A stretch of DNA of 64,000 bases, taken from positions 11,408,001-11,472,000 of the forward strand of contig OZ249436.1 in the NCBI GenBank assembly GCA_965235115.1, given 5' to 3'. Made by a program: the position numbers and the translations under genes. The notes beneath the pieces were generated by a model. That model was given only the letters and a program-made list of their open reading frames with translations. It did no database searches and was not told the origin of the DNA. Positions 96-60,000 of this stretch are shown piece after piece. The stretch is from Laetmonice hystrix (taxonomy: Eukaryota). Every line of letters starts with the position of its first letter. The first letter of the stretch is position 1.

Positions 96-3000
96 CTGAG
101 AGAGGAAATCATATGGAGAAACATCAGGACAGATGTGATGAGAAAACTATAACTATCTCTACAACTACCACCTTTTTCTATGGCTACAAGATGTACCAAA
201 AGTTACCATTACGGGATGGGGGTTGGTGAGGAGGGGTTAACTCACCGCTCGGTCTCGGTCGTTGGCCTTGATGTTAACGACTGGAGTGCCCTCTACTGGA
301 TGGTTGATGCTGATGGTGTCGTCAAACTTGCCCTCAAACTCAGGGAGGTACTGGTCGCGCTGCACTTTGACTTGAACTACCACGGAGGCAGTCCGCTCAG
401 GCACCTTACCATCTCTGGCTGATACTTGGATCTGTAAACATCGGGACAGTACATATCATTGGTGGCAATGGTTGGGGTGCATAGAACCAAACTCAGGAGG
501 AAAAGGAAAATGTTATATATGAACAATGGTGCATTGTTATACTGGGCCTATACTCACATTATAAAGTGTCTGGGTGCCCTCCGTAAGTAGTCGCTTCAAT
601 GTGATCGTGCCGGTATCTGCGTTGATGTAGAAGAACTGCCTTGCAATGTTATCTCCCGTAATGGAATACTTTAGACTGTCCTGAAAACAGAAAATATCAT
701 TTAACCAAATGTAACTATATAAAAAGGGGACAAGAAAACTTGACTTGTATATGAACCGTACAGGTGACAGTGACTTACCCCATCCAGATCGGTGGCGTTC
801 ACCTGTGTAACAAAGGCGCCCAGTTCGACCGTTTCAGGTCCTTCCACAGCGTAGTTAGACTGTGTGAACGTGGGGCCGTTCTCATTGCGGGTTACCGCTA
901 TGGTTACTACTGCAGTCGTCCTCTGTCCAGGGCTCGCACTGTCATAGGCCACGATACGTAACTAAAACATACATCCCACATGGTGATCAATATACAGCCG
1001 GCACGATCATCTAGAAAACTTTATATTACATACGTAAAAATAACATGTATATCAGAATGTTTATGTCTTTTCCCCTCGCGAATTTCAAATTGTATACCTT
1101 CAATGGCTCAACGAGCTCTCTGACCCATACAACCTTGCTATATTCATGACGACTGTCGGTATAATTGACGTCAATACTTACCGTGTACTTGGTCTCATCG
1201 TCTGCCTTGAGGTTACTCTTCACCACCAGGTGGCCGTTATCCTCATTGATACCAAAGAACGTGGGAGCTGGCATGTCTCCGATTACAGCGTACTTCATGG
1301 ACCCTCTCAGATCTCGGTCCAAGGCTTGTACCTTGGTGTAGAACTCCCGACCTACAGGAGCGTTCTCCGAGACGGTGGCGTCTTTGTAAGGTGTGTCACT
1401 GAACGACGGCTTCGACTCGTCTCGGGTAATTGTCACGATGACGGTGGCGTTAGCGATTCGCTCTGGGTCACGGTTGTCGGTGGCTTGGATACGTAACTGC
1501 CAATCGGAATTTATAGTTTGAATCAATCGCATCAACTGTTGTTGAAGTTCAATAACTTTCATGATTTGTAAAACAAATATTGGTATTCCCCTAACAATTT
1601 CGCTCATATCGCTTCCAAAGCTATCCAAATACAAGGTTGAAGAATCAAACAAGAAAGACAGCGTTGTTTGTGATTTACTATCCTGTATTATCATTAGCCC
1701 GACTCTCCCTGAGACAATGTTGTGTTTTACTTACCGACTCCCCCTGAGACAGTCTTGTGTTTTACTTACTGACTCTCCCTGAGACAGTGTTGTGTTTTAC
1801 TTACTGACTCTCCCTGAGACAGTGTTGTGTTTAACTTACTGACTCTCCCTGAGACAGTCTTGTGTTTAACTTACTGACTCTTCCTGAGACAGTCTTGTGT
1901 TTTACTTACCGACTCTCCCTGAGACAGTGTTGTGTTTTACTTACCGACTCTCCCTGAGACAGTGTTGTGTTTTACTTACCGACTCTCCCTGAGACAGTGT
2001 TGTGTTTTACTTACCGACTCTCCCTGAGACAGTGTTGTGTTTTACTTACCGACTCTCCCTGAGACAGTGTTGTGTTTTACTTACCGACTCTCCCTGAGAC
2101 AGTGTTGTGTTTTACTTACCGACTCTCCCTGAGACAGTGTTGTGTTTTACTTACCGACTCTCCCTGAGACAGTGTTGTGTTTTACTTACTGACTCTCCCT
2201 GAGACAGTGTTGTGTTTTACTTACTGACTCTCCCTGAGACAGTGTTGTGTTTTACTTACCAACTCTCCCTGAGACAGTGTTGTGTTTTACTTACCAACTC
2301 TCCCTGAGACAGTGTTGTGTTTTACTTACCAACTCTCCCTGAGACAGTGTTGTGTTTTACTTACCGACTCTCCCTGAGACAGTGTTGCGTTTTACTTACC
2401 GTATATTGTTTCTCGGAAGTTTCCGTCAGTGGTTTGGTAACCGTGATAAGGCCAGTGAGAGGGTTCATATAGAAGAACGGTTTCACGATCTCAGGACCAA
2501 TCAACATGTAGCGAACCTCATCCTGCAACAAACCACGAATTATTTAATAATCTTCAAATATACATCTACTCGGAACATGCGACGAAACCGTACATGCCCT
2601 CCCCAATTCTTTGGTTTCTTGCATAATTCATTATAATAATGACGTGCGCGAGTGACACAAACAAGATAATCTACTATACCTAACTTAATCCTTTTCAAAT
2701 AAAATCACCACTTTATGTACAGAACGTTTACGGCTACAATATTTGATCTTGCTGTGTATTATTTAAAGAGCCATCCATTATCCCGCAATCCCCCCCCCCC
2801 CTACACACACACACCCACACTCCAGAAGTCCTGCCTCCCACTCACCCCGTCCCTATCGGTAGCCTCCACCCTGGCCACACTTTCCCCGATCGGGTAGTTC
2901 TCCACGATAGTGGCCGGGTAGTTGGAGCGGGCGAACACGGGCCCGTTCACGTTTCTTCTCACTGTGATTATGACGTCTGTGGTGGCTCGTTGGTTGGGGT

Positions 3001-12000: not shown

Positions 12001-15000
12001 CTATAGTAACACATCTTAAGTAACCTTTAGAAATCTTTTCTCTGCGGAATTTTGAGGATCTTTATTACGCTGTATTTCTGTATCTATGTTTTAGTTGCAG
12101 TCGTTTTAATATTAGTATTGGCTCAGGTTCTGCATGCGTCCACTGGGTTGCTCCAAGCCCTTGGTCAGACCTTACATGGGTCCGTGAACAGACCCAGTAC
12201 AAGTTTTACTATTTCCCTACAACATATGTTCATTATGAGATGATCTAGCTGACACTCACGCCATCGCTGTCGGTAGCGTTGACCTGTATGACGGGCTCTC
12301 CAAGAGTTTGTTTCTGAGTGACAGATATACGGTACTGGTCCTGACGAAACTTGGGAGCGTTAGCGTTCCTCTGGACCAGGATGGTGACGTCAGCAGTGGC
12401 AACTCGTCCTGGGTCCTGGTCGTCAACGGCCGTCACTCTCAGCTGTAACGGAAAAACATTTTTAAATGGTATTTTTTATATAGAAGAACACAAAAAACGG
12501 CACGGAACTCTTTCAAGATTTAACCTGAATTGACCTTTCCCCCAAGTTTGCCATTTTTGACTAGAATTCCACAAGTTGTATGTGTTGAGTTGTAATGCTA
12601 GCAGTGAGTGTATCAAGTTCTATGTGTTGAGTTGTAATGCTAGCAGTGAGTGTATCAAGTTCTATGTGTTGAGTTGTAATGCTAGCAGTGAGTGTATCAA
12701 GTTCTATGTGTTGAGTTGTAATGCTAGCAGTGAGTGTATCAAGTTCTATGTGTTGAGTTGTAATGCTAGCAGTGAGTGTATCAAGTTCTATGTGTTGAGT
12801 TGTAATGCTAGCAGTGAGTGTATCAAGTTCTATGTGTTGAGATGTAATGCTAGCAGTGAGTGTATCAAGTTCTATGTGTTGAGTTGTAATGCTAGCAGTG
12901 AGTGTATCAAGTTCTATGTGTTGAGTTGTAATGCTAGCAGTGAGTGTATCAAGTTCTATGTGTTGAGATGTAATGCTAGCAGTGAGTGTATCAAGTTCTA
13001 TGTGTTGAGTTGTAATGCTAGCAGTGAGTGTACTCACAGTGTAGACAGTACGGCGGTCCTGTCGAAGATCTCTCTGTACTCGGATCTCTCCTGTCGATGG
13101 ATCCAAACTGAAGTATGTGGGAGCTGGTACCACACCGTCTGTACCGAACTGAATCTTTCCAACCAGATCCTGGTCTTCGGCTGCAACCTGCGGTCACAAC
13201 GGCACAACGTTATACGGCTGCAGCTGGGGGTGCACGGTAATTACTTAGCACAGTAATTAGGCCTACATTTCAGCCGCTAATGATCTAACGTTACTTTCTT
13301 CAGAAAGACACCGTCAAGGAATGCGGGCAATGAATGGTCATCCCTCCCGTTTCTTTGCAACCTGTGAACAACTTCCCCCCAGAAAACTCAAATCTTCATA
13401 TAGAATTACCGACCTTGAATATTGAGCTTGCGGCTGGCCTGAACTCGGACACCGACACCTGGTAGGGTGTGTCGATGAAGGTTGGCGACGACTGCTGTCG
13501 TTGGACAGTGATGTAAGCTGTAGCCGCGTCACACTTCTGGGGAACGTTGTCGTCACAAACCTCGATGTTCAACTGGAAAAAACAAACAGAAGATGAACTA
13601 AGATTGTAACTTCAATATGCCCGAACCGAACGACCTGTGATATCATTATTTGAGTCCCCACAAACACTGAAGATTCCTGGAGGATGAAGTGAACGATGAC
13701 TTACAGTGAAGGTGTTATCCGAGGTTTCAGCTAGCGACCTCTTCAATGACACGAGTCCTGAGTCTGGGTTGATGTAGAACGCTTGCTTGGCGCTGTCACT
13801 GCCGATCAACTCGTACGTGATCTGGTCCTGTGAAAATAAAACAAAATATGTCATTTCTTGAGGACGCGTTAAAACAAGAGTAACAATTTAAAGCAAATCT
13901 AAATACGCATCAAAACGTCTCATTTCGAAATCTCTGTCCTCATATGAGTCTAACCAGAAATTAGTTGCGTTGATGAAAGTAAATACAACACAAATCTGAA
14001 CTAAACACTGCGGGACATACCTTGTCAGCGTCCGTGGCTGTCAGTTTGAGTACACTGGAGCCGAGTCGATGGTTCTCAGCTAGGTTCAGTCGGTACTCAG
14101 GCCGGGCAAAGATTGGAGCGTACTCATTACGTGTTACCTGGATAGGTACCACGGCAGTGGTCACCTGGTCAATGTACGCTGTGTCGTATGCAACCACTCG
14201 AACCTGGCAATATAACAATATCATAATAACTGCATCTATAGGTCACACAATACCAGAGGGATATACCACGCTTCAATAGAGGCGTCGCTTTCTTTTTTAT
14301 AAATCCAACCCAATTTTGTTAACCTTTCATCGTACTCATGACGCCAATGGGGAAGTTATACCACCAGGTGGCGCCATGATTCTGGCTATGGTTTTTGTAA
14401 TGCTACAATCTAAGATTGATCGTCCACCAACCCTGTAGAGTGTCGACTTGAGATTATCTGTCTTCAGATCGGTTTTCACGGAGATCTGTCCACTTGTCGG
14501 GTTGATGGAGAAGAAGCTCGGGGCCGGATAATCTCCGGTAATCTCAAACTTGATTTTCTCCATGAGATCTGGATCGTGAGCGCGGACCTTGAATATGTCC
14601 TCGCCGACCCGCTTGGTCTCCGGGATACGCTGAACATTGTAAGGCGTGTCGTCAAACCGTGGAGCGCGGGTACTCCGACGGACTGTAATGTACACCGTCA
14701 TGGTGGCCTTTCTCTCCGGGGTCCCCTGGTCACTGGCTTCAATCTCCAACTAAACAAAACACAAACCAAACACACGGGTATTAAACACTGCCAGAGTTGT
14801 CAACTCCCACCTCCTGTCTGCCTTTCTCACTGGAGTCGGCCCCATATATCATAGAGGCGAATGTACCAAAACGAACTTTTCGATATAAAGTTATTCAGGA
14901 ACATAGGGTAAGCAGGAACATGGCCTAAATAGGAACATGGCGTAAACACACAGAGATATACTGTCGAACACAACATACAATCATATCATGGCAAAGACTT

Positions 15001-18000
15001 TTTTGAAACAATTCATATTTCAGTCACGTTCAAGCATGAGCAGGTTGAAAATTAACAATTTTTAAAAATTTTATTATTTTTTTTCTTTATGCAAAATAAA
15101 TCGTCATTCTAAGTCAGGAGCGTCAGTAGGCCTATCAGTCGTGTCGAGAATTTCAAAGTAGATTTTTGTTGGTACAAAGTAACAAAATGTTACAAGCATG
15201 CCAAAAGTCCGTTTCTGTTTCTGTTGTCCAGAAATTGTAATGCTTGGTTTATTAAAACATTGACCTTGGTTTATCTCTAAGTGCCACTATTTACAAATGT
15301 GATGGGCAAGTTTAAAATGAGCGGCAGTTTTATAATGCTTGTCTTAATCTACTGTTATATCATCCGTATTAGGATCAGCATACAAATCAATAACTAGATA
15401 TGCATGCAGAAATGAGCAAACTTGAAATCGTTACGAGTAAAACTCAGAACACGCTCAATCAACAGTGTTCAATCACATAGCTATCCCATATTGTACACCG
15501 ACAGACATACAAGAGATACACACACAAGAGGTAAGACTTGGTGTACCTGTTTATACCAGGGTTAAGTACCGAATGCTGTTAGTACACTAAACTCAGGTCG
15601 GGACGAAGTCATACATGCCTGTCATATACAGTCAATGGGTTAGTATATCAGTCATCTTTGGTAAATCTTAAACAGTCCTAAATTATGCCATATGTAGGAG
15701 GTGCTACTTCTCTCTTCTGTCTATAGCTCTTATCACTACCGAGCCTTAAATCTAGGAGTAGTCTTGGAAATCTAGAGGTAATATAACATCCTATAGAGAA
15801 AGGAGACTGGTGACAAATACATACCACATGCTGCGGAACTTATCGAGATTCATTCTGTCACCTTACACTTAATGCTAAGACAGGATAACCATTTGTGCCG
15901 GGATTTTATTTATCAAGGGCAGCAGCTACATCAGTGACACGGTCACATATGAAGCACACTCAAAGGGGACTACAACTTCACTTGTTATTTCAAAGCATGG
16001 CGTCATCATGTCGACACTTTTCACAAGGCATGTTTACTTTCTACAAGCTCATAGCTTACAGGAAAATGAAGCCAAAATGATTTCACATCGTTCTCATTCA
16101 TTTCAAGGACGTTATTGTAAGGATGAACATGTGGGAAGCTGTTACTGAGAATCTAGTCAGAGACAGACAGCAGACCATGTAAGGACATTGAGAAGGCATG
16201 GAGCATGGCGCTGTATCAGGCATTACTTGTCGGAGAGAAATTTGGAAAAGTTTCATAATCCTTCTGCATGAATACTTACATACTGTTGGTCATATGGTCA
16301 TTCGTCTATATACACTATTTATCGCTAGGTATTTATCAAAACACACGAACACAAAAGGTTATCTTAGAGTTGGTTTCCTGCTGATAAAGCATGGAAACGC
16401 AGTCTTCCAAAGATCAAAGAGACAGAGAATAAAGATCCATGACATGGTCGTCACGGGTAATACGGAGGTGTACACAAAACTGGCACAGAGTCATGTTAAT
16501 TCAGGGAGTGGCCACCAGGGGGACACCAAATCTCGTCTACTTACCACGTATTCAGAACGTTGCTGCAATACAGCGTCAGATTCAAAATCAACAATTGGAC
16601 TCTGGTACAGTCAAACCTCGTCAAACAGTTTGATGCCCATTAAAATGTGTTCGGATTGTAAAACATACGGATTACTGAATCATTTTAAATAGAATAGTAG
16701 AAGAGGTTGCCAGAAAGTGTGTTCGGATTTATACGGATTAAAGAATGACGGATTAACGAGGTCTAATTGTACTTAAAGGCGACCACGACATCTGAGGTAT
16801 ATTTTTAGTTAATTTTTTCCCTTAGAATATCACAGTATCTCTAATCTAAACAATATCGACATTCCGATTACTGAGCTAAGGCTCGCACTGAATGGAAAGG
16901 AATGAATGATTTCTTTTAATCAATACATGTACATTATCTTACAATCATAAAATGACACAAGCGTGCTAAACAGTTGCATATCTCCCTGGAAGTCATCTAG
17001 ACGGACAATACAACATCTAATATCATTTATTTATCTAAATACACCGACTTTCAGCGTGACCCAAATCAACTTTCATTTAACCATGTTATTTTATTTGAAC
17101 GAGAATTTCATTCAAAGCCACAATAAGGACTAATGAAATAAGAAAAGCTGAGACAGATAAATTCTGACTCTGAGCCACTACCGTTCTTTTTGAAGTTCTA
17201 AAATACCAGCAATCACATGACTTCAAGGTATACTCTGAAAATTAACAAAAACTAGATGGAGTGTCATATTAAAGGTAACTTACCTCGAATCCTGTCCGAC
17301 TGCCTGGGTAGAGCATCTTTTTGACGGTCACCGTGCCTGTGTCGGCGTCCACGTGGAAGTATTTCAGGGCCTCGGACTGTCCCTCTGCACGGTACACAAT
17401 CTTATCCTGAAAACGTACCACAATTTTATCAAATCTCTCCAAATATTTTTGGTGGATGGTTTTCATGTAATCTTTTTATTTACTATTAGTAAAAAGAAAA
17501 TCTATTTTGTAATAATTGTAGACTGTAGAATTCTCTGGTATTCCACCAGGTGGCGCAGTGATCAAACACCTAGCGGCGCCAGTTTGAACCACCCCTCCAA
17601 GCACAGATCGTATCACCAATATTGTAGGTGTACTGTGTAGACTTACGCCGTCGGGGTCGGTAGCGTTAGGTTTATCAGTGACGACATATCCCAGGGGTTC
17701 CGTTTCTTTCATAGTGAGACGGATGGGTGTATCGTGTGTCCAGCGTGGTCGGTTTTCATTACGCTGCATGGTCACATCCACCACAGCTGTCGACGTACCC
17801 TCGGGGTATATGTTGTCGTAGGCCAACACCCGAATCTTGTAGGAGAATGCCTTGTCAGACTTGAGATTGTTAGCCACCTTGATCTCGCCACTGTTCTTGG
17901 AGATGTTGAAGAAGTAGGGTGCCGGGAAGTCGCCAACTATGGCATACTGGATGCGACCCTGAAACCAATGGGTAAATACGTCTAGTTTTAGACTTTGTGG

Positions 18001-36000: not shown

Positions 36001-39000
36001 GATCACGTTATGAGGAGCCTTGGTGTCCTGGTCCGTGGCGTTCACGTCAGCGATGGCGATACCGAGGGGAAATGTTTCCAGGATATCCCGGTCGATACGT
36101 TGGGGTTGGAACTTGGGCGCGAACAGGTTCCTCTTAACATTCACCCGAACGGTGGAGGTGGCCGTCTTCATCGGGTCTCCGCCGTCAGCCGCCAACACCC
36201 GCAACTGGTGGCCAACACAATACATAACATAACATATCAAGACATAATGACTTATAATCTACACTCCTCCTGCGACATTAAGACAATAGTGTGGTATAAT
36301 AGTTTGGCGGTACCTACCGTATACATGGTGTCTGAGTCCGACATGAGTGAACTCTTCAGTGTGATGTCACCACTAGTGGGACTTTTTATCTGGAAGAACG
36401 TCGGGGCCTTGTTGTCTCCAATGATACGATAAGTCACCTTGTTAAACGGAGCCTGAAAGGGAACAACAACAGTCACTTTAAACAACCGTAACGCTTTACT
36501 GTAAACTTCATTCAACATCAGCAAACACATGGATGTTAACAGCAGTATATCAGTGGGCCCAGACCCGCTGGAACCCACCTCCTTGTCCTGATCAGTCGCA
36601 GACACCGAGTAGACGGCCTTGCCAGCGGCTAGATTCTCATTGATACCGGTGGTGTACGGCAGGCGCTGGAAGACAGGTGGCTGACGGTTACGGCCGATGG
36701 TGATCGTAACGTCAGCCTCTGAACTCTTGCGGGGTGGGTCACCGCCATCATAGGCCCTGATCTTGATGCTGTAGGTCTGAGCCTGGCAGGGCTGGAGGAG
36801 GAGGGACTGTTTCAGAACCAGAACTCCCGTTACGGTGTTAATGGCGAAACATTCCTTGGCGGCGTTGTTACCAGTGATCTCATAGTACACGTCATTGTAG
36901 GGTTTCTGAAAATAGCAGAAAATGGTAATGAATAAACAAGGTCATATCTTGTTTCTGACTGGGTGATCAAACTTAAATCAGCACTGTGATTATCTTGTTA
37001 CTGAATCTGCTTGACCTGTAATAGATGTTGTAGAGTGTGACATGGATGCTTACCTTCCTGTCGCTGTCCTTGGCCGACACCTGTAGAATGGACGTGCCCA
37101 GGGTAGCACTCTCATTGATAGCCTTGGCGTACCTCGACACACCCCACTGAGGATCAGCGAAGTTACGCTCCACGTCTACGTCCACTGTTGTGATGTTGTA
37201 CCGGAAGGGGGTGCCACCGTCGCGCACACGTACACGGATCTATCAAAGGTTAACAAACGTTGGTCAAGTTCAACTACACAAACACCGTTCTCCGTCAGCG
37301 CCTTAAAAAACTTTCTCCCATCATTCTGACGTAATAACTGAGTGTTCTTACCGTGAGCTTTTCAAGCTCTGTCTCTCGGAGGCTACGTTTGACACTGATA
37401 TCTCCAGCCTCATTGATACTAACGTGATAACTGAGTGTTCTTACCGTCAGCTTTTCAAGCTCTGTCTCTCGGAGGCTACGTTTGACACTGATATCTCCAG
37501 CCTCATTGATACTAACGTGATAACTGAGTGTTCTTACCGTCAGCTTTTCAAGCTCTGTCTCCCGGAGGCTACGTTTGACACTGATATCTCCAGCCTCATT
37601 GATACTAAAGTAGGTTGGAGCGGTGTCGTCACCGATGATGTCATAAGTTAGGTCACTGAATGCTCCCTGTACAAAACAAACCGACAGTGTCATTTAGTTA
37701 AAGAAAGTAATTGCCTAATACTTATAAATCCATCACATGAAGCTGGAATCTTCAACCTGTTTAAGATTGACCCGTTACCTTTATTTGATAAGAAACTGAC
37801 AGCTTAGAAATAGACGAGTTCCTTAAAGTCACGACTTTATTACATTAACTTTAGATTATCAGTGATCAAACACGCCTAGTGACTGATCTGTGAGTGGATA
37901 AAGAGTTAGATGACCTTGGTATCCCTGTCCCGGGCTCGGACTGAGAAAATCTTCTGGTTAACGCCCTGTGTCTCTGGGATGGCGACAGCGTACGGCCTGG
38001 TTCCTTCAAACTGTGGCATGTTGGTATTCCGTGTGACGGTCACTGTCACCCTGGCCAGGCGTGACGATACCTTGGGTGGGTTACCGCCGTCAGTCGCCTT
38101 AATGTCCAACTGAAACCGGCGCCACATCATAATCACGGCACTAATTACATAAACCGGCGCCACATCATAATCAACGCACTAATCACATAATCCGGCGCCA
38201 CATCATAATCAAGGAACTAATCATATAATCCGGGAACATTCTCTATCTCACAGCCGCCATGGGTAACAGAGAAAACAAGTTCCTAATCACTTAGCTTTGC
38301 TTCAATAAAAGCTTCAATAAAAACCAATGTCTGGGTCACGCTCATGTATTTCGGACATCACTATTCTCTAATGCAGGTTTACCAGGAGTTCCTGTTATCA
38401 CACCAGAGAATGTACTCAAACTGACCGTGTATCTTGTCCTCTTGCCTGGGTCGAGTTGTAGACTCTTCATGACGGCTACCTCTCCCGTGTCGGCATTCAC
38501 CATGAAGTACTGCACAGCCTGAGGCCCGCCAGTCAGTTCAAACTTGAACGTGTTGTAGGGGGCCTGGAAACCACCATGAACATGTACGAATAACTATAGG
38601 TTCTAGTTTTAGCACTGATGGTGGTGTTCCATGCAAACGGAGAGACCAGCAGAGACCTCTATGAGCGGAATTGGGAATGAGGTCTGGGCCATCGGACCCT
38701 CCAAACACAGCGGCTCTCAATCACTCCTATTTCGCGTCCTTATAAATAATTCCTTTTTAATATTTTAGAGAAATGTAAGATTTATTTAGATATCCACTGC
38801 TGACGTACCTTTTGATCCTTGTCGGCGGCCTTGACCTGTGTGAACGGTACTCCGATGGCCTGAGTCTCCATGATGGTGGCTGAGTAGGCCTGAGGTGAGA
38901 ACACGGGAGCCTCCAGGTTACGCTGTACGCTTACCGTCACAACCGTTGTGTCTGACTTGGGCGGTGTCCCCCCGTCTCTGGCCAGAACTCTCACCTGGAC

Positions 39001-42000: not shown

Positions 42001-45000
42001 ATAGCTCAAGTTAAGAGACCCTGAGATAGGGTCAGGTGAGAGAGATATTTAAGTAGGTGAAATGATCCTATTAAGGGGCATTTCGTCCAATTGTGAAACA
42101 CTGTGAAGTGTTATTGATTATTGTCATCAATACGAGACGTCCAAGTGACATTAGTTTCTTAATTAACATGCAATCATACGTGATCAATTAATTCATTCTT
42201 TGAGCATTTCAGTAGTGGTTTCTCAGTACCGAACTGGTGATGCATTACGTACAGCCATATTTGATACATGTCCAGAAAAACAAGTCATACAAGTTGTAAA
42301 GTTTTTGGGAATATTATGTTATATAGGAGGAAATTATACTAAACAAGCATTTTTTTTTGAGTCTGCAATCTACTGAACTCTATAGGAATCTAGCGTCAGA
42401 TTGTATTAAAGAAGGAATATCAATCACATGACTACATGTATCTATCGATATAAAACTAGCATTTACAGTGAGGCAAAATTAACAGTGAGTGCATTTGGGA
42501 CAGATAATTAACAAGATCAATGGTTTACACGATCTATTAAAATGGTGTGTGCAATCAAAATAAGTAAACTAAGTAAGGTATTAGTGGTGGTGTTAGTAGG
42601 TTGCTGGTATTAGGGAGTACTAGGCACAAGGACACAGACAGCACACAAAACCCTCCCAGCCGGGGAGACTCTCACAAGGGTGACCGCCTTATGTCAGTAG
42701 CGTTTCCCTGACCACCTGGGACTCAAGGGGCAGGCGCAGGAGGAACTTTTCACTGTCCGACCGCCGCACGCCAACGGCAGTTTCAAGGACGTAGAACAAC
42801 TGGGTGAAAACTAGAGTCACAGTTCACGATTCCACCGATCCCTTTAGGATTTCAGACACCCAGGTCTACGCAGGGACCAGGCGAACACATAATGTTTAAA
42901 AAATCAAAAATTAATATTAAAAGGAAACTAAATCACCTGCCCTTAATGTGGGAAAACATTAATGAGAAGCAAAATTGTGACGCAGCCATGGTTGAATGGA
43001 TAAGCTCCCAGGTTGTTAACACCTAATTCAAGACCTTACCCGAATGTCCGTACGCGTTGTCTGACTCAATGGCTTGGCAAGCGTTACGACGCCCGTGTCA
43101 CGGTTCACGTAGAAGAAACTGTCGTCTCCAGTCCTCTCCACCATCTCGTAGTAGACGGAATCCTGAAAGGTCAAATGGTTCTCAGTTAGGATAGCAAATT
43201 CCAACTAGTAACATACACCATTTTGATAACTCATAATTTCATCTCCTTGAGCACCTTATTGTTGACTGATTACACGTACACGCACGCTGACCTAACACCT
43301 GTCTAATTTCTAATTCCATGTAAAACTTTCACTCAGTAAGTTAAGAAGCCAGTATTGTGACGTATACCTTGTCCTTGTCCGTGGCCTTGACCTGGGTGAT
43401 GACCGTGCCGATAGGGATGATCTCGAGAACTTTAGCCGAGTAATCGTACGGCTCGAATCGTGGTCGGTTCAGGTTACGAGTGACTGTGATTGTCAGGTTT
43501 GTCTCTGCCTTGTTTGTAGGATTTGCCTCATCGTATACGTGAGCTTCGATCTGAAATATCATCGCTTTGATATCTAAATACTGGAGTTTTAAACCAAGGG
43601 TGTCTTGTTTTGTTAAACATGCACTCAGCCTCCCTCAAATTGTACATAATATAGAAGTGTGAGTAGGATGAACGCTCACTGAGAGAGCTCACTTACCGTG
43701 TAGTTAAAGAGCCGGTCTGACTTGAGCCCACTCTTCACGTAGATTACTCCCGTTTTTTCACGGACACCGAAGAAATACGGCGCTGGCACGATACCCGTGA
43801 TGTCATAGATCAAGGTACCCTGAGGAAAGAAAAGGGAACAATGTAATGTGACTCATATCCACCTAGTCTCTGTCAAATCATTAATACGTAATATATATAC
43901 GGAATCAGGTTAAATATGTCCAGTCCTGCCTACACTCGGGCAAACGCCGACTTCTCCCAGCCCAGATCCAACCTATCAACCTCACTAGACAGTCAATCTG
44001 ATTGCGATTCATACCATTTTGTCGTCGTCTCGACCCCTCAGTTTGAAGACACTGCGGCCCACAGGTGTTGTCTCTGGGATGATCACCTTGTACGGCAAAC
44101 TCTCAAATGTCGGAGGTTTCAAGTCACGCTGTACACTGATGTAGATCAGGGTAGTGGCTGTCTTCTCAGGTACACCCTTATCACTGGCTTTTATGTTGAA
44201 CTGGAAGCAACATGACATATTATCACGTTTCAGAAACTGAATGGAACCTTCAGAAGAACTAATATATACCGGGTTCAGTGAATGTGTACTGTGTACTCGA
44301 GTACTTACCCTGTAGGAGACTCTGTCCTCCACACTCAACACCTTGGCCAGGGTCAGAACTCCCGTCTCCGGGTGCATGTAGAAGAAATCAGTCTCGGGTT
44401 TCTTAGGAATCAACGTATACTCCAGTTCATCCTGCAAAATAATGAAATCATATTCATATTCTAACATCGTACAATCAGCATCATATTTCGTAATGTCAGA
44501 ATGAAATCTGCTTATAACATTTGAATGACATGAAAGATCTATTCATCACGACAGAATATAAGACGTTGTACCATGTTGAACGGTGACCTTACAACCTGAC
44601 CACTTACCCCATCTCTGTCGGTCGCCTTCACCCTGAGGATGCTCGCTCCCACGTCTGTTTTCTCAGAGAGTGGATCCTTACGGTACTCACTCCTCTCAAA
44701 CCTTGGAGCGAACTCGTTCCTCCTCACTGTGATGTTTACCGTAGCGTATGTCACCTGTTCTCGGACCTCAAACTGTCGCTTCGCCTGCACCTGTAGCTGG
44801 TAGTTACTTAGTTTGGCCACGTCTTGCTTCAGAGATTTCTTTATGGTGATACGCCCACTGCTCTCCTCGATCTTAAAGTAATCTGGAGCGGTGCTGAATC
44901 CAAGGATCGCATACTTCACGTTGTCCTGTCAAACGGATAGTTAAACTTGTCTTTATTTTAATATTTGTAATATTTGTACTTACTGAAATCTGTATCTTTG

Positions 45001-48000: not shown

Positions 48001-51000
48001 TGAATGGTGCCTACAAATGATATAATAGTACGTGTTTACGAGTTAACGCACACAGCGGTAAATGGTGCCTACAAATGATGTAATAGTGTACGTGTTTTAA
48101 GAGTTAATGCACACAGCTGTAAATGCCAAATAAAACCAGCTATTCAAAATATACAGTCAATCATGAAGACCCATCAAGCAGTATCCCGCATACCCTGGTG
48201 TCTGAGTCCCTGGCCACCACTGAGATGACTGAGGTCCCTGGTGACGCGTCCTGTTTGATGGTACGTTTGTACTCCCGGGTTGAAAACTTGGGTGAGTTCT
48301 TGTTCCTGATCACGGTCACCGTCACAATGTTCGGACCCGTTCTCTGGGGCGGCACACCCTTGTCGATAGCGTACAGGTTCAACTGAAAAAACAACCCAAA
48401 TACATGTTAATAGGGATTTCAGGGAAATGTGAAAACTTAAACAAACTCAACCAGAGTCGTCTCTTTCGGATCTTTTAGAAAGAATGACATTATAACGATA
48501 CCGGTGTTAATTCTGCTGTAAATAACAGAATTTCAAATATTGATCTCCATTGATCGGTTTATTTGGTATATTGTGTCACTTACACTGTAAGACTCAGCAG
48601 TGTCTCCGATCAAAGACCTCTTCAGGCTGATTACCCCCTTGTCGTCCACAGCGAAATGTTCATCAGTCAGCTGGTAAGTGACCTGGTTGTGAGGTGGTTT
48701 CTCGTCTGAATCCCTGGCCGACACCTTGAGTACCGACCGGCCAATGGGCTGGGTTTCTAGAATAGTCGCCTTGTAGTTGTTACTATCAAAGTTCGGAGCA
48801 CGCAGGTTCCTCAGCATGTTGATGGTGAGGATAGCGGCCGCCTCCCGAGGTGGGGTCCCACCGTCTTGTACTGCTACCCGTACCTTGTACTGAGTCTCGT
48901 CTCCAGGCGCTGACCGCAGACTGTTCCGTACTTTGATCTCTCCCGTCGAATCAATGCTGTAGAACTGAGGAGCGTTGTCATCGCCCACGATGAAGAAGGA
49001 GAGTTTGTTGAATGGTACTCTCGTGTCGGCGTCGCGACCCTCCACCTTGAAGACTCGGGAACCGATCGACGTCGACATGTTGACGGAGATGGTCGCCGGG
49101 AGATTTCCAAAACGTGGAGTTTGTTTGTTACGAACAACCACGATACTAACCTGGGCGGCCCTGGTTGATTTCTGTGGCGGTGTTCCCAGATCCGTGGCAT
49201 CCACACGGAACTGAAACAAGGCATTGTAATCTTGCTACAATGTGTACACTAAGTAGGCCTGCTCTTTTTTATAATTTGTAACAAATGAACAAATCAGATA
49301 CAGAGGTTTCTTCATTCAATGGAATACCTCATATTTTTCTCGGGTATCCTCCAACAGTGACTTGCGTAGTGAAATGTTTCCAGATACTTCATCAATCATG
49401 AAGAAACTGGCCATTGCAGTGCTTTGAAGTGAAAATCTGGTAACGTTGTGTGGGTACTGAAACGGGAAATTGGCTTGATAAACACTCTGAACCAAAATAA
49501 AGTCAAATGGCTTTATGTCAAAAAATCATAAAACTAGACAGATTTGAGGATGTACAGATGTACTAAATATGCATTCCCTTGATGAGAAGACGTGTATAAC
49601 CTACCACTCTGTCCTTGTCTCGAGCCGAGACGGTGAGGATACGCTGACCCAGGGCATGGGTCTCCAGAATGGTAGCGTCATAGGTGCTCGGGTTAAACTC
49701 GGGCCTGTTGAGGTTTCGTTGAACAGTGACGGAGACTGTGGCCGTGGAACTTGCTGGAGGAGTCCCTCCATCCTTGGCCAGAATCTTGATCTACGTACGC
49801 CAAGCGAACAGCAGGTTAATATTGAGAATATTCATACGATCTAGATACAGTATCACAGAATGATCGGTATTATCTACATGGCATCAATAATAGTATCGTA
49901 AATATTTATAGTGATTTTTATCTTTTACAACAGTTTTTGTTACAGCAGACGCACAGGAATCCACTGTACAATATTTCAGCCGGGACCATCACTTTTATGT
50001 TAAACACCAATAACAAGAATTGATATCTATGGAGAATGTCATTACTAACCGTGTAGGTTGTGGCGCTGTCTGCCTGCAGACTTGACTTCACTCGAATCTC
50101 TCCCTGACCCTCCGACACGCTGAAATATGCCGGGGCCTGGTCGTCTCCAATGATGCTGTATGTCACTCGGTTAAATGGCACCTGTACAAACCAACCAATG
50201 CTTAATTAATCCATCATTACATCCAAACAAATTCAAACTACAAAACCTATACCTTTATTACTGGGAGTGTACAATGTACAACCCATTCAGTCATCAGTCA
50301 TATTGTAAAGCTTGCCCTTTAAAAAGCCTGTCCTGTTACAATATACGAGTTAGTGGACTGACCGTGGTGTCGCGGTCAGTGGCGGTGACAGTGGTCACTC
50401 TGTTGTTGGTACCCAGGTCCTCCTTGACCGTTGCCTTGTACTGACCACCACTTGTAAACCTTGGAGCGTTCTCATTACGTCGGACCGTCACCGTCACTGT
50501 GGCGTTACTCCGTGCGGCACAGGGCTCCGGTAAACCAAGGTCAGTGGCTCCCACCAACAGCTGAGGTCGGGGAAACAAATCAAGACTTTTTATTTCTAAA
50601 TACCAAATACAAAAATAAACAAAGGAACTAGCTTAGAAAGGATGGCTGCTCACCCTGTATGTTTTGGCCTTGGTTGGTTCGTTCTGGATGGACTTTCGCT
50701 GGTAGATCGAGCCACTGATGGGATCGACTAGGAAGTATTCCTGTGCCAGAGCATCACCGTACAGGGTGTACCGCACCTGGTTAAAGGGGGTCTGCAAAAA
50801 TGGTCAAATATTGAAAAATTGTCAATCTGGTAATTACTCAAAAACACCTTTAAATCATCCAGCATTGGTCTATGGACGTATCAATGATACTGACTGTGAC
50901 ACGATGTCCGAAAATGTTTCACGGTGTGGTATCTGTTTTCTTTGATAGTAGGGAAAATGTGTAAAGATAATGCATAATAAAGATAACGGGTGACTATATT

Positions 51001-54000: not shown

Positions 54001-57000
54001 CTCTTGTAAAACAGCAGGACTTGTAACAAAGTGACGGGGAAATCAGAGGTTGCGTTAGGAACACAGCAATCCACCTTTAAAACGGTAACGTTGAAGGTGG
54101 TCAGAGAGTCCAAAACAGCTATAGGTGGCAGCAAGGCTATGTGCTGAAACGTGATGCCATCATTCCTTGAATAAGACTGGACTACTTTCTCTTGAGATTG
54201 GTAACTCTGACAGTACCCACGATATGATCCATTCAACAACAACAAACAAGAGCATCTCCCCAATATCTATCCCCACCCAACTGGTCTCATCACAAGGCGG
54301 TCACGTTAGCCACTAGGTGGCACCAGCGTCTCTCCCCCTGGCGGCAGTCCTGGCTGTAACTCCATGCCCATGTACCTCCGACACACAGAACTACTTGAAC
54401 ACTCACGTTAATGTCGGCATCCCTGGCGAGGACCTGCTTGACGACAGTACCAACGTCTACGTTCCGCTTGATTGAAGCCACGTACGGAGTCGCCTCAAAC
54501 TTGGGACTGTTGAGGTTACGAGCGACGTTTACCGTCACGCGAGCATTCTGGTTACTGGACAGACTTGGCATACCCTTGTCTCTGGCTTGGATGGTCAACT
54601 GGAAAACACCAACACAACCTCGTGAAGTTTGATAATCCTTTCATATACCTTTCCTCGAAAAAATCAAATCAATTTTGTGCCTCTATGGATTAAAATCAGA
54701 GTAATATTTTAACTAGAATACTGACACTGTATCTAGCGTTGGTGTCGCTCGCCAAATCCTTCCTGACAGATACTTCGCCTGTGTCCTCGTTAACGATGAA
54801 AAACCTCTGGGCGAGAGTGTCCGATATGAGGTAATACTGCACCACATTGTGAGGTTCCTATCCGAACACAAACAACATCATTAATTCACCAGCAGATTGA
54901 TCTGGGCTATGTAGTCATGAAAGTAGGCCTACTTATCCTTATAAAGGTGCATTTACGGGAGGTTTCCCCAAAATAATGTCGTCCTAAAGCAGAAACTGGA
55001 ACTAATTCATTATACGAAGGTGGTCCCTCTTGGACATCACCCAAAAGAACACTGGATTTTTTAGGCGACATTTGTATACATGAGTTGCCATTTTCCCCAA
55101 AAGATGAAGCGTGTCGGCTCACCTGTTGGTCGGTGTCGGTGGCAGCCACCTTGGTAATGGGAGTGCCCAGTTCCTGTGTGTACAGTATGTTAACGGTAAG
55201 ACTTGTCTGACTGAAGCGGGGAGCGTTCAGGTTACGGTTGACGGTAATCTTAACGATGGCGACGTCTGATTGGAAGGGAGTGCCGTTATCGAAGGCTTCC
55301 ACACGGATCTGATACTCCGTCTCTGTGTCCTCGCGTAGTGAAGACTTTAACTTGATGTCTCCCGTACGGTCATCGATTTGGAAGAACGTTGGCGCTGAGT
55401 CGTCGCCAATTATCCTGTAGCGTACCACTCCAAAACGCTCCTATAAAATAACACAATTAGTTTACGCTGTAGTTTTTCAGGAACTCAAAGAATAAAAAGT
55501 TCTGTTGATTTTCATTTAAACTACAATATTAATTCATCGTACATTTCTTAAAACAATAATTCAAAGGATATCAAGGAAATCACATCCTTCAGTAAGAACC
55601 TTTCAAATAGTGAATAACAAGTCGATCTAAGTTATTTTTCCATTCATCAGCGTTCAAAGCCCCAGACCCATGCCAGGGATGCTAAGGTTACCTGTGGGTC
55701 CCTGTCGTTGGCCTTGACTTGGACGATGCGGCGGCCAGTCTCCTGGTTCTGGGTGATGGATGCGGCATACACTTCCTTCTCAAACTTGGGCGGGTTGTCA
55801 TTACGAACCACTTCAATGTTTACTGTCGCGTTGTCACTCGTCCGCTGGGGCGTGCCCAGGTCCTTGGCTATGATCCGGAACTGTTAATAACATGAGACAT
55901 AAACCAATTATATAACTCAAAAGGAAACAAGAAAAAGAAAGATTTATTGATTGACTGTATGATGGGGTCACTAAACCTGCTATGTGTCTTACCCTATAAA
56001 GCTTGACCCGGTCCTCGTCATTCAGCAATGATTTCTTCACAGCGATGTCCCCCGTGTCCTCGTCCACCTCAAAGAACTCCAAAGCTTTGGTGTCTCCAGT
56101 GGCCTCGTAGAAGAATTGGTTGTTTGGTGCCTACAAAACGGCAGATTCAGATTATAAATATCGTCCAGGTCAGAGATAAAAATAGGAAAGGAAAGACATC
56201 TTGAAAACTGCGGCACATTCAGGCTGCCCAGAGTCAGTACTCTCTTTTGGCGCCAGTTTGTCTTCCAGTTTGTCTTCCAGTCAAATTCCAGATAATCCCC
56301 CTACTGGCGTCATTTTCTGCCAACCTTTTCTTTTGAAACCAAACTTCCCCCCTTTTAGATTCGCCCCTGTGAGTGATATGCAATCATTCAGAAAACTGAA
56401 GATATAGATAGGGAGACGTACCGCCCTGTCTCTGTCGCGTGCGGCCACCTTGTGGAAGTATACACCCTGTGGCTGGGTCTCCGGGATTTTCACAGTGTAA
56501 TCGGTTTGTACCCAGGTCGGGGAGAAGAAGTTTCTCAAGACTGTGACGTAAACAATGGCGGTGGCACTCCGGGGTGGGTTACCGCTGTCCTGGGCAACCA
56601 CTCGAATCTGGATCCAACAAAAGGGTTTGTCAGTAAAGACAAAAGACTTAACATTAGAGCTTGTTTCCCGTAGTCAACTTCTACAAAGCAAAGGTGTAAT
56701 TGTCCTCACTGCAATTCACATTCAAAGGAACGGGCAATAATATACAATGATTGCTTTTTCATGAAATGATATTGTTGATATCTGTGAAACACTCCCTGAG
56801 TTTAAACCTTCCCGCCAGAAGAGATTTTACCCTATAGAGTTCTGTAGTTTCTCTCTCCAGTGAAGACTTTGTCGTCAGGGTACCAGTCTCAGCGTTGATC
56901 GCAAAGAAGCTCGGAGCAGTGTCATCTCCAATGATTCCGTACGTGACGGTCTTAAAGTCCTCCTGAAAACGTCACAGCAACAAGAAAAATGATTCTTCAA

Positions 57001-60000
57001 TTCAACAACAAGCTTAAGCTAATTATTCTAATCTTAATGTTATAAGTTATGAGGACTCACGGCCGTATCAGCGTCCTTGGCTTGCACGGAGACGACCCTA
57101 TGTCCTGACGGGACGTCCTGCCGGATGGTGGCCGTGTAGGATGTGTTGAAGAAGATCGGGTCGTTCGTGTTACGGACTACCGTCACACGTACGGTGGCAC
57201 GGTTAACGGCCCGCTTCGATGTCGGTTGACCTCTGTCCTTGGCGCTAATCTCCAGCTACGAGAGTCAAGGTCATTCAGTTAACGGTCATTTCTCCATGGC
57301 AAATGTTTTTTGTCTATAAACCGGCTATATCTTTGCTATCGATTCAAAATACTGATTACAAATAAATTCAAGTTAAAAATGTTCATGTATCCTATCCTTC
57401 CCTCCCCTTACTTTATTGTAGACTAATTGTTTAAAAGTCAAACACTGACTGTGTAACGTGTTCTACGCTCAGGATCCAAGACGACAGATTTCTTCAGACT
57501 TATGTGTCCTGTGTCCTCATTGACCATGAAGTATTCCAAGGCCGTGCTGTCCCCAGTCAGTGTGTACGTGACGTCTTTATGAGGAGCCTACAACCACCAA
57601 ACACAATCTTACACACCCTCCGGTATCTGTGTTACACGAAAACAGATTTAACCTAACTTAAAGGGAAATAGAGCTGAGTCCAGTTTCTTTTTCAAAACTC
57701 AAGTTCTTGCTTTTGCGTACGCTAAAGCTTCTTGAAGCTAAAGTTACTGATTAGATGGCTGAAGCAAGAACTAAAAAACTTAAGTTTTGGGTGCTAGTTT
57801 CTTTCTGTACCGACCTGGACGTCTCCGTCGGCGGCAGTGACCCGGATGAAGGACGAAGACAGAGGCTCGTTGTCCTGGATGGTGGTACGGTACGTCTCGG
57901 TCTCAAACCTGGGTGCGTTCAAGTTACGGTTGACAGTAACCGTCACCAGACCCTCAGCGCTTCGTTCACCACCGTCTGTCGCCCTCACACGTACCTGGTG
58001 GTCACACGCACAGTAATCAGGTTATATGTGTGGTAATCAGAGAATAAAATTCTCTTGAGTTTTACTGCAGGACCTTCGGAAGGAGAGTCTGGTTTTGGCT
58101 AATAGTTTGGTACTTGATACTTGGTGTCGATAATTTTATACTCACGACATAACCGAGGTCTTGGTCCTCACGAAGACTCCGGGCGATGGAGATCTTGCCA
58201 TTCGTTTTGTCAATCTTGAAGTAGCGTGGTGCCTTTCCATCCCCAACAATTTCAAACTCAATCTTGTTGAAAGGCGCCTGAAAAATTGAGTAAACAAAAA
58301 ATATATCATGCCTATGTCACCAGTTATTCAGTTATTGTAAGCTTATTTCACTTGCTTCCAGTTTTCTGTTACTAAAATTCTGTCGGATATAACTCAGTAA
58401 GTGACATTCGTTGGTGTTCCTGTCCCTGTAAGCGGATATAACTCAGTGACTTACGTTGGTGTCCCTGTCCCTGGCGGTGACCTGAAGAACCTCCTCATTG
58501 ACAGCCCGTGTGAAGTCGATATTCTTGGCGTACTGAGGAGGTGTGAACTCGGGAGCGAAGTTATTACGAATCACATTGACGGTCACCTGAGCTGTGGAAC
58601 TCAATGATGGCTCTCCCAGATCACTGGCCATCACCGTAAGCTGGAACAGGGTGGCGGAGACGTTGTACATCTAAGGTTCCATCCATCTATATGTTATGGT
58701 TCCATTAGAACAATACACGTTTCGTAATACGTAATTTCTGGTCAAGTTATGTTTCTCCCGCAGTACTTACCACATAGCGGGAAGTTTCCTTGTCCGTTGT
58801 GACGGGCCTGCTGACGGTAATCGCGCCACTCTCAGGGGAGATGTAGAAGAAGTTCTGTCCTGAGTTGGGGTTCACTGTACGGATGGAGTAGCGTATCTCA
58901 CTGTTAGGTCCCTCGGGATCCTTGTCCTCTGCCTTCACCTGAACGACCTGAGTGCCAGGAGACACAGTCTCCAACAGGTTCGGGGCTGTGTAAGATGCTT
59001 TCTCGAAGGCAGGAGTGAAATCGTTTTGATCCTGGAAACAAACAAGACAAGACATAAGAAAGAGGCTCGTGCTATACAGAGTGTTTCCCATCTATTATGG
59101 TGACCTTACTTTATACGTAAGTCAGTTTTAATGAAAGCGGACAATTCTAGTATTAAAAATGATAAAAAGGTTTATGAAACCAGAACAAGATGGTTGCAAG
59201 GGGACCTCACCAGTACGGAGATAGAGACAGTAGCTGAGTACTCGGGACTGTTCTGTCCGCTGGCCTCACGGGTTGATACGACCAGAGTATATTGTTTCTG
59301 TCTCTCGTAGTCCAGTCCCTGGCTAGTGGTCAGTTTACCGGACCCCTCCTCCAACCGGAAGCGACCCGTATCTCCCCGTACGATGGCGTAAGTGATAGAC
59401 TTCTTCTCGTCCTGGTCCACAGCCTGGTCACAAATCACGCAGTACAATCAAATAACCTTCTCAACTAACAATTTCAAAGAATGTTTACTAATTGTTATAT
59501 CATATAGAATGGTAACAAATATCAAGAAAATAGGACTAATGGTCAGGATTAGCTTGGTTTGTTGTGGTCCCATCAAATTTCGTGGACATGTTCTGAGGGT
59601 GTATCTCCTAACTGAGCTAGAAGTTCAAATTGTTTCCAGCAGCTCGCTGGTTGTTGGCGCCGTTTACTCACCTCCACCGTGGTGACCAGGTACCCTGGCT
59701 TGTTCTCCGGTACCTGGGCCACATAGAGTTTGGTTGGGAAGACTGGTAGGACATCCTCGACGTCAATAACCTTGATGGTGACGGCAACGACAGTGGCCCG
59801 CTGATCGAAACCAGTATCAGTGGCTGTCACTAACAATATGTGTTCCTTCTGGTCCTCGTAATCTAACGGTTGGCTTGTCCTGATCTGTCCGTTCGTCTCA
59901 CCGATCGTGAAGAAACTAGAGACAAGACCAAGGTCATTATAGGCCATGTTCATGCGTACATTCAGGGAATACAGAAAATGTAGCTTCCTTGATGCTCATC

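Follow-up and report, generated by a model that had tools for sequence, protein, structure and literature searches.

Is a run of more than a hundred exons that can each be skipped without loss of frame a device for making protein isoforms, or a trace of how a gene was built? This question is raised by a 64,000-nucleotide stretch of the Laetmonice hystrix genome (the window: NCBI GenBank assembly GCA_965235115.1, contig OZ249436.1, positions 11,408,001 to 11,472,000), a gap-free eukaryotic sequence labelled G000:C1:11408001-11472000 in an assembly that totals 627 Mb in 35 contigs. The minus strand of the window carries a long array of phase-0 exons encoding cadherin repeats, in which the original prediction saw a possible combinatorial splicing cassette system. 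Our analysis revealed that the array is real and that its all-phase-0 plan is best seen as an ordinary legacy of duplication; no support was found for a role as a combinatorial cassette system. We consider that the locus probably encodes a giant single-pass cadherin of ~80 extracellular cadherin (EC) repeats that is constitutively spliced and whose exon plan is the record of ancient duplication (probability about 0.7).

Exon structure of the array

The minus-strand open frames of the window encode cadherin repeats, with matches to Pfam PF00028 of up to 71 bits. As seeds for profile hidden Markov models (HMMs), the fused exon at 48584-49210 was cut into four parts, two of which, one per type, were used as A and B seeds in iterated searches over all minus-strand open frames. 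These searches revealed 59 A and 60 B half-domain matches in strict alternation. The A piece is ~44 amino acids long, with the consensus xPFNxVxYxIxGDxxAPxFFxIDxxTGxIxxKxSLxxDxxxxY, and the B piece ~62 amino acids, with the consensus RVxAxDxGxPxxxxTAxVxVxVxRNxNAPxFxxxxYxxxIxExxxxGxxVxxVxAxDxD. Exon boundaries were placed by sequence modelling only: every GT and AG near each piece was scored with a generic metazoan weight matrix that was blind to reading frame. The best-scoring donor was in phase 0 and at the homologous position in all 107 window exons, and the best-scoring acceptor was in phase 0 in 101 of 107; in the other six, a phase-0 site at the homologous position scores almost as well. 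As background, the candidate sites within these search windows numbered, for phases 0, 1 and 2, 211, 172 and 100 among donors and 200, 51 and 82 among acceptors.

From 59031 down to 246, the minus strand contains exactly 107 exons without an in-frame stop, all with lengths divisible by 3. The predicted run of 107 consecutive phase-0 exons of such lengths was thus recovered at the same coordinates by scoring that ignores frame. The array does not close at 246, as had been supposed, since a 60-kb flank from the same assembly holds 26 further phase-0 exons below the window. The whole array comprises 133 exons, corresponding to 73-74 cadherin repeats and 7,754 amino acids; all 133 exons have lengths divisible by 3 and phase-0 borders, and all 132 introns are GT-AG, with a median length of 216 nucleotides. 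Since all exons are symmetric (0,0), the frame survives whichever exon is skipped, and the prediction that loss of an A+B or B+A run keeps the frame is correct in its logic, the A/B alternation being restored as well. In-frame skipping in the array is therefore possible as far as exon structure goes.

The exons are not all half-domains, as had been claimed: 97 of the 107 in the window are (48 A and 49 B), and the other 10 are fused exons of two to four halves (5 BA, 4 AB and 1 BABA). The array and its fused exons, all on the minus strand, are as follows.

246..59031, minus strand: phase-0 exon array of cadherin repeats with RN linkers, 107 exons (HMM matches, splice scoring, exon table)
58771..59031, minus strand: first array exon, fused BA, 261 nucleotides (junction from 59211 to 59031, phase 0, best total score 10.1)
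55123..55440, minus strand: fused AB exon, 318 nucleotides (exon table, Pfam)
48584..49210, minus strand: fused BABA exon, 627 nucleotides, 209 amino acids (Pfam Cadherin E=9.9e-20; AlphaFold confidence 95; three ancestral intron positions gone)
44608..44925, minus strand: fused AB exon, 318 nucleotides, where A exons shift from 44-46 to 41 amino acids (exon table)
36579..36905, minus strand: fused AB exon, 327 nucleotides (exon table)
35881..36204, minus strand: fused BA exon, 324 nucleotides (exon table)
35418..35744, minus strand: fused BA exon, 327 nucleotides (exon table)
17647..17958, minus strand: fused AB exon, 312 nucleotides (exon table)
14432..14749, minus strand: fused BA exon, 318 nucleotides (exon table, Pfam)
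1182..1496, minus strand: fused BA exon, 315 nucleotides (exon table)

Two B exons are 9 nucleotides short. The one at 45286-45462 ends without DxD, precedes the fused exon 44608..44925 and coincides with the change in A-exon length; the other lies at 29181-29357.

Intron positions in the fold, linkers and ends of the gene

The fused exons, in which adjoining halves can be read without an intron, scored 44-71 bits against PF00028 (cut-off 28.8). The BABA exon, which also served as structure and homology query, gave an AlphaFold model with a predicted local distance difference test (pLDDT) score of 95 and the seven-strand beta-sandwich of an EC domain. Its top Foldseek matches were all cadherin ectodomains (E down to 1.8e-13), and the nearest solved structures were ectodomains of CELSR1, CDH23 and protocadherins at 20-27% identity. 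Both introns lie mid-domain, after the DxD motif and after the Tyr, as had been predicted. According to the HMM columns, one falls 0-2 residues past DxD, in the B-C loop of the model; the other falls one residue past the conserved Tyr, inside strand F (residues 107-115, spanning the junction between 109 and 110). A B exon thus covers the end of one repeat (strands F-G), the linker and the start of the following repeat (strands A-B), and an A exon covers strands C-E. With two intron positions inside the fold, each EC repeat is spread over three consecutive exons.

The 74 linkers of the array are of the type RNxNxPxF instead of the canonical calcium-binding DxNDNxPxF, with the consensus V.V.RN.N.P.F across all 74 B exons (e.g., window 48698-48883). 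The first Asp site is itself variable, and the position after it is Arg in 73 of 74 linkers, followed by Asn in 58 or Asp in 13. At the second Asp site, Leu, Glu and Gln predominate (Glu in 16 of 74). The Pro persists in 71 linkers and the Phe in 67; the Asn residues, the DxD motif and the strand-A Glu are also retained. Such linkers would be expected to bind less calcium, with the Arg perhaps taking part of its role. By sequence, the RNxNxPxF linker defines a distinct EC subtype, common to the lophotrochozoan models named 'Fat 4-like' and described here for the first time.

At its 5' end the gene has a different structure, which the rough exon model places as follows.

59175..63599, minus strand: 5' part of the gene, irregular exons with mixed intron phases and canonical repeats with DxNDN linkers

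The prediction had counted exons E1-E9 here, with phases 1 and 2; the irregular structure stood, and of the non-zero phases at least one junction (60083 to 59915) is best read as phase 2. The first array exon, 58771..59031, opens with DQNDFTPAF; these residues supply the remainder of the N-terminal part's last canonical DxND linker. Downstream of the array come four irregular exons, then canonical DxNDN cadherin repeats and then a membrane helix; non-zero phases appear here in exons 139-142. No EGF or laminin-G module was found between the array end and the membrane helix, where a Pfam scan of single open frames, which small exons could escape, returned Cadherin only. Lacking these modules, the gene is unlikely to be a true FAT orthologue.

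Immediately beyond the membrane helix (L004:4060-5106, minus strand; ~25-26 kb below the window start), the open frame continues into a long proline-rich repeat of PPPQVRT and PGTYPTLTP units, with all three frames open. It may represent a low-complexity cytoplasmic tail or a minisatellite within an intron.

An EC repeat is typically ~4.5 nm long. At this length, the 74-repeat array alone would measure ~330 nm when extended, and we infer a tether or rod function for the protein.

A two-domain super-repeat and the age of the array

Comparison of the repeats with one another revealed that they are old and individually distinct. Mean identity was 32% among A and 35% among B pieces, with maxima of 65% and 55%, respectively. 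A blastn comparison of the window with itself yielded no more than four exon matches, all short, at 70-80% identity and between distant units, and no intron matched any other.

The repeats are ordered along the array. Those separated by an even offset were more alike (0.352) than those at odd offsets (0.319), a difference that none of 2000 permutations equalled, and 68 of 73 units followed the two-domain parity rule. The A exons also alternate between 44 and 46 amino acids in the first third of the array. The array therefore contains a two-domain super-repeat, which is new here. The same periodicity was present in the Patella and Tubulanus homologues; it was looked for in the Lingula homologue and not detected.

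This even/odd period points to an ancestral amplified unit of two EC repeats, or four exons. If all copies derive from one such unit, the 108 phase-0 introns that border the 107 exons are not 108 independent events, and the number to be explained falls to the founder's two to four positions. Phase 0 is the commonest intron phase in general (PMC8001218), so a founder with only phase-0 introns is unremarkable.

The exon plan in other lophotrochozoans

An exhaustive profile search yielded 685 proteins at E<=1e-30. The best relatives, which also have RNxNxPxF repeats, carry the names 'protocadherin Fat 1-like' or 'Fat 4(-like)' and belong to the lophotrochozoans Haliotis rubra (XP_046564129.1), Patella vulgata (XP_050391949.2, XP_055954929.1 and XP_055954920.1), Tubulanus polymorphus (XP_074647699.1) and Lingula anatina (XP_013411494.1). 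Overall identity to the relatives was 24-36%. Whole-array blastp showed a modest preferred register only, and the signal for domain-by-domain orthology with Patella, taken from the B exons only, was insufficient (best diagonal 0.351, background 0.311).

Five RefSeq proteins were mapped exactly onto their own genomic loci: Patella P0007 (XP_055954920.1), P0010 (XP_055954929.1) and P0006 (the other Patella model), Tubulanus P0008 and Lingula P0009. All five consist of alternating exons of ~183-186 and 123-138 nucleotides, all in phase 0, with non-zero phases confined almost entirely to the last ten or so exons. By these models, the exon plan is conserved across at least three lophotrochozoan phyla, with a limpet (Patella), a ribbon worm (Tubulanus) and a lamp shell (Lingula) as examples; no description of the gene family or its exon plan was found in the literature searched.

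Four of the five models (P0006, P0010, P0008 and P0009) omit none of their 200 genomic A/B exons. The fifth, P0007, omits 19 intact exons, three of which it uses in part as 66-nucleotide partial B exons, and makes B-B and A-A-A joins. Since these joins and partial exons would break EC folds, we read the omissions as an annotation artefact; they are also the only hint that skipping might be real. Annotation has split this Patella homologue (L010, OW026349.2:14522983-14569560, and L013) into at least two adjacent models, XP_055954929.1 following XP_055954920.1 directly on the chromosome, and array exons are also present beyond either end of XP_055954920.1. Searches with the BABA exon matched relatives' genomic open reading frames (ORFs) only, and neither these nor searches with the irregular part of P0007 matched any transcript-derived protein.

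The genomic ORFs trace the fate of single introns. Close relatives retain the BABA exon, the intron downstream of it and the B exon that follows, with exons at 83-89% identity and a diverged intron; the relative P0151 has the same fused BABA exon at 83% identity. In distant relatives (50-63% identity) an intron separates the two BA halves, as in P0152-P0154. Ten exons are fused in the L. hystrix window, two in Lingula and two in Tubulanus. The BABA exon, fused here and in a close relative and split in distant ones, indicates that introns have been slowly lost, with no sign of selection to keep each.

A genome-wide profile search also revealed dozens of single-exon open frames of ~900-1,860 amino acids between 1.0 and 27.4 Mb of G000:C4 (e.g., L014:487-6072) and at 3.19 Mb of G000:C13 (L015:589-4338), with canonical DxNDN cadherin repeats. 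Protocadherin-like genes thus appear to have expanded greatly, mainly on a single chromosome. We considered them as retrocopies recording spliced forms of the array gene and rejected this, since canonical linkers and ~27% identity mark them as unrelated protocadherin-like genes.

Introns, minisatellites and sequencing runs

Among the 132 array introns, no 8-, 10- or 12-mer was shared beyond shuffled controls, indicating that docking and selector elements of the Dscam type are absent. Most of the introns (96 of 132) are below 300 nucleotides. Short introns favour intron definition, under which a failure of splicing tends to cause intron retention, not exon skipping. The only public sequencing runs found to contain the locus, three from one sample, gave continuous genomic contigs over 44600-50590 with single-nucleotide polymorphisms and small indels and without spliced joints. 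Among these haplotype contigs no insertion or deletion of the size of a repeat unit was found.

One alternative in-frame form is visible in the DNA itself.

37329..37608, minus strand: tandem repeat of 93 nucleotides x 3 over the 3' end and donor of an A exon (repeat inspection)

It contains three identical donors (ACG followed by GTAAGA) 93 nucleotides apart in one open frame, so that the exon may end at 0, +31 or +62 amino acids. This triple donor is the only concrete in-frame alternative seen in the sequence.

Intronic minisatellites with periods of 33-93 nucleotides, 2-20 copies and 92-98% matches adjoin or overlap exon ends at 1699-2401, 5189-5421, 12572-13032, 22046-22429, 23010-23509, 27744-28576, 31282-31490, 32372-32860, 37329-37608 and 41138-41204. 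Owing to this position, a splice site falls within the repeat unit, in some cases together with the final or initial codons of the exon. At 1699-2401, a 35-nucleotide unit occurs 20 times with a GTAAGT donor in every copy. Periods divisible by 3 (42, 93, 33 and 51) keep the frame open through the repeat.

Explanations for the all-phase-0 array

We propose that the window holds most of one very large minus-strand gene, in which ~74 of ~80 EC repeats would lie in the uniform 133-exon array. The array probably grew through ancient tandem duplication of a two-EC-repeat unit of four exons, whose intron positions would have happened to be phase 0 and been inherited by every copy. On this account the pattern is a duplication record, not a splicing adaptation, because all copies inherited their phase-0 introns. 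The transcript would be spliced constitutively into one very long rod-like ectodomain; in-frame exon skipping, which the structure permits, would probably be minor noise and not a regulated combinatorial system. Several points weigh against this proposal. We infer constitutive splicing in L. hystrix from relatives' annotations and sequence features only, and all three runs are genomic. The RefSeq models give one isoform each and are silent on minor forms, and one of them, P0007, has the 19 omissions and three partial exons described above; if RNA backs that model, extensive skipping in Patella is real. Moreover, skipped symmetric exons escape nonsense-mediated decay, so such isoforms would be tolerated.

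Two kinds of regulated splicing would make use of the symmetric exons. In a titin-like system, blocks of exons, probably in multiples of four so that the two-domain periodicity is kept, would be skipped in frame to give tissue-specific ectodomain lengths. That all 133 exons can be skipped in frame, that one A exon has three in-frame donors and that P0007 joins non-adjacent exons, with one clean A-B-A-B skip between 23569 and 26329 of L010, are consistent with this idea. The same P0007 model contains joins and partial exons that look like an artefact, a search for transcript-derived proteins covering its irregular region found none, and the other four models include all 200 exons. Introns with a median of 216 nucleotides are expected to be retained rather than to cause skipping, and loss of a single domain-equivalent would break the conserved two-domain alternation. 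We regard such length tuning as unlikely; its more specific form, in which four-exon blocks of two EC repeats are skipped tissue-specifically to yield extracellular tethers of graded length from one gene, with P0007 as a first glimpse, is somewhat less likely still. A Dscam-like choice among similar cassette exons, combinatorial or mutually exclusive, would produce many recognition isoforms, and the many in-frame exons of two recurring types recall it. The strict A/B alternation leaves alternatives of one type unclustered, the introns have no k-mer in common beyond what shuffled controls show, a complete EC repeat needs parts of three consecutive exons, and the relatives' models use their exons in series. 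Exon order and the absence of shared intronic elements thus contradict the Dscam-like diversity that had been suggested, and we give it hardly any credence.

The original prediction also held that the locus is primed for copy-number change, which would make the array currently unstable through unequal crossover between repeat units. Repeat numbers do differ (~74 here, ~28 in Patella P0006 and at least 55 in P0007 and P0010 together), and the locus is rich in minisatellites. The units share no DNA similarity beyond the four short matches of 70-80%, their introns none at all, and the repeats are only 32-35% identical; being old and individually distinct, they do not leave the locus primed for such exchange today. 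The parity pattern is unbroken over 68 units, the haplotype contigs of the one sample over 44600-50590 contain no unit-sized indel, and the order of BABA exon, intron and B exon is retained in a relative at 83% identity. Present-day instability is accordingly most improbable, though less so than Dscam-like choice.

Comparison with known systems and significance

The array shares with titin and nebulin its very long tandem series of one fold, exons of the same phase whose skipping keeps the frame, and a higher-order super-repeat, which here recurs every two domains. A titin exon generally corresponds to one whole domain, whereas the borders here lie inside the domain and a repeat extends over three exons; skipping of titin I-band exons is documented by transcripts, whereas the array is known from DNA alone. 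Drosophila Dscam1 likewise has many in-frame exons encoding parts of a beta-sandwich adhesion domain. Unlike Dscam1, this locus has neither clusters of same-type exons nor docking and selector elements, and the exons are used serially in relatives.

CDH23, PCDH15, FAT4/DCHS1 and CELSR1 resemble the predicted protein in the cadherin fold, the long EC chain and the single membrane helix, but have 27-34 repeats, compared with ~80 here. Some linkers of PCDH15, CDH23, FAT and DCHS are known to be non-canonical; here this holds for almost every linker, and an Arg is invariant. In contrast to FAT4, no EGF-like and laminin-G modules were found, and the relatives' name 'protocadherin Fat 4-like' is automatic. 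The lophotrochozoan models of that name have the same RNxNxPxF repeats, two alternating phase-0 exons per repeat and an irregular 3' end, but differ in repeat number and show weak domain-by-domain orthology; none has been characterised.

Combinatorial splicing of the array, if true, would give an adhesion molecule a new means of varying its length or specificity; the findings favour a more ordinary cause, the repeated copying of symmetric exons. Automatic names such as 'Fat 4-like' and some gene models at such loci are unreliable, as seen in Patella, where the gene is split and one model omits exons. The array is a clean, conserved case of repeat exons bordered inside the fold, found in at least three lophotrochozoan phyla. 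It defines an uncharacterised lophotrochozoan cadherin family with ~30-80 repeats, whose two-domain period and Arg linkers, devoid of the calcium ligands, are relevant to cadherin mechanics.

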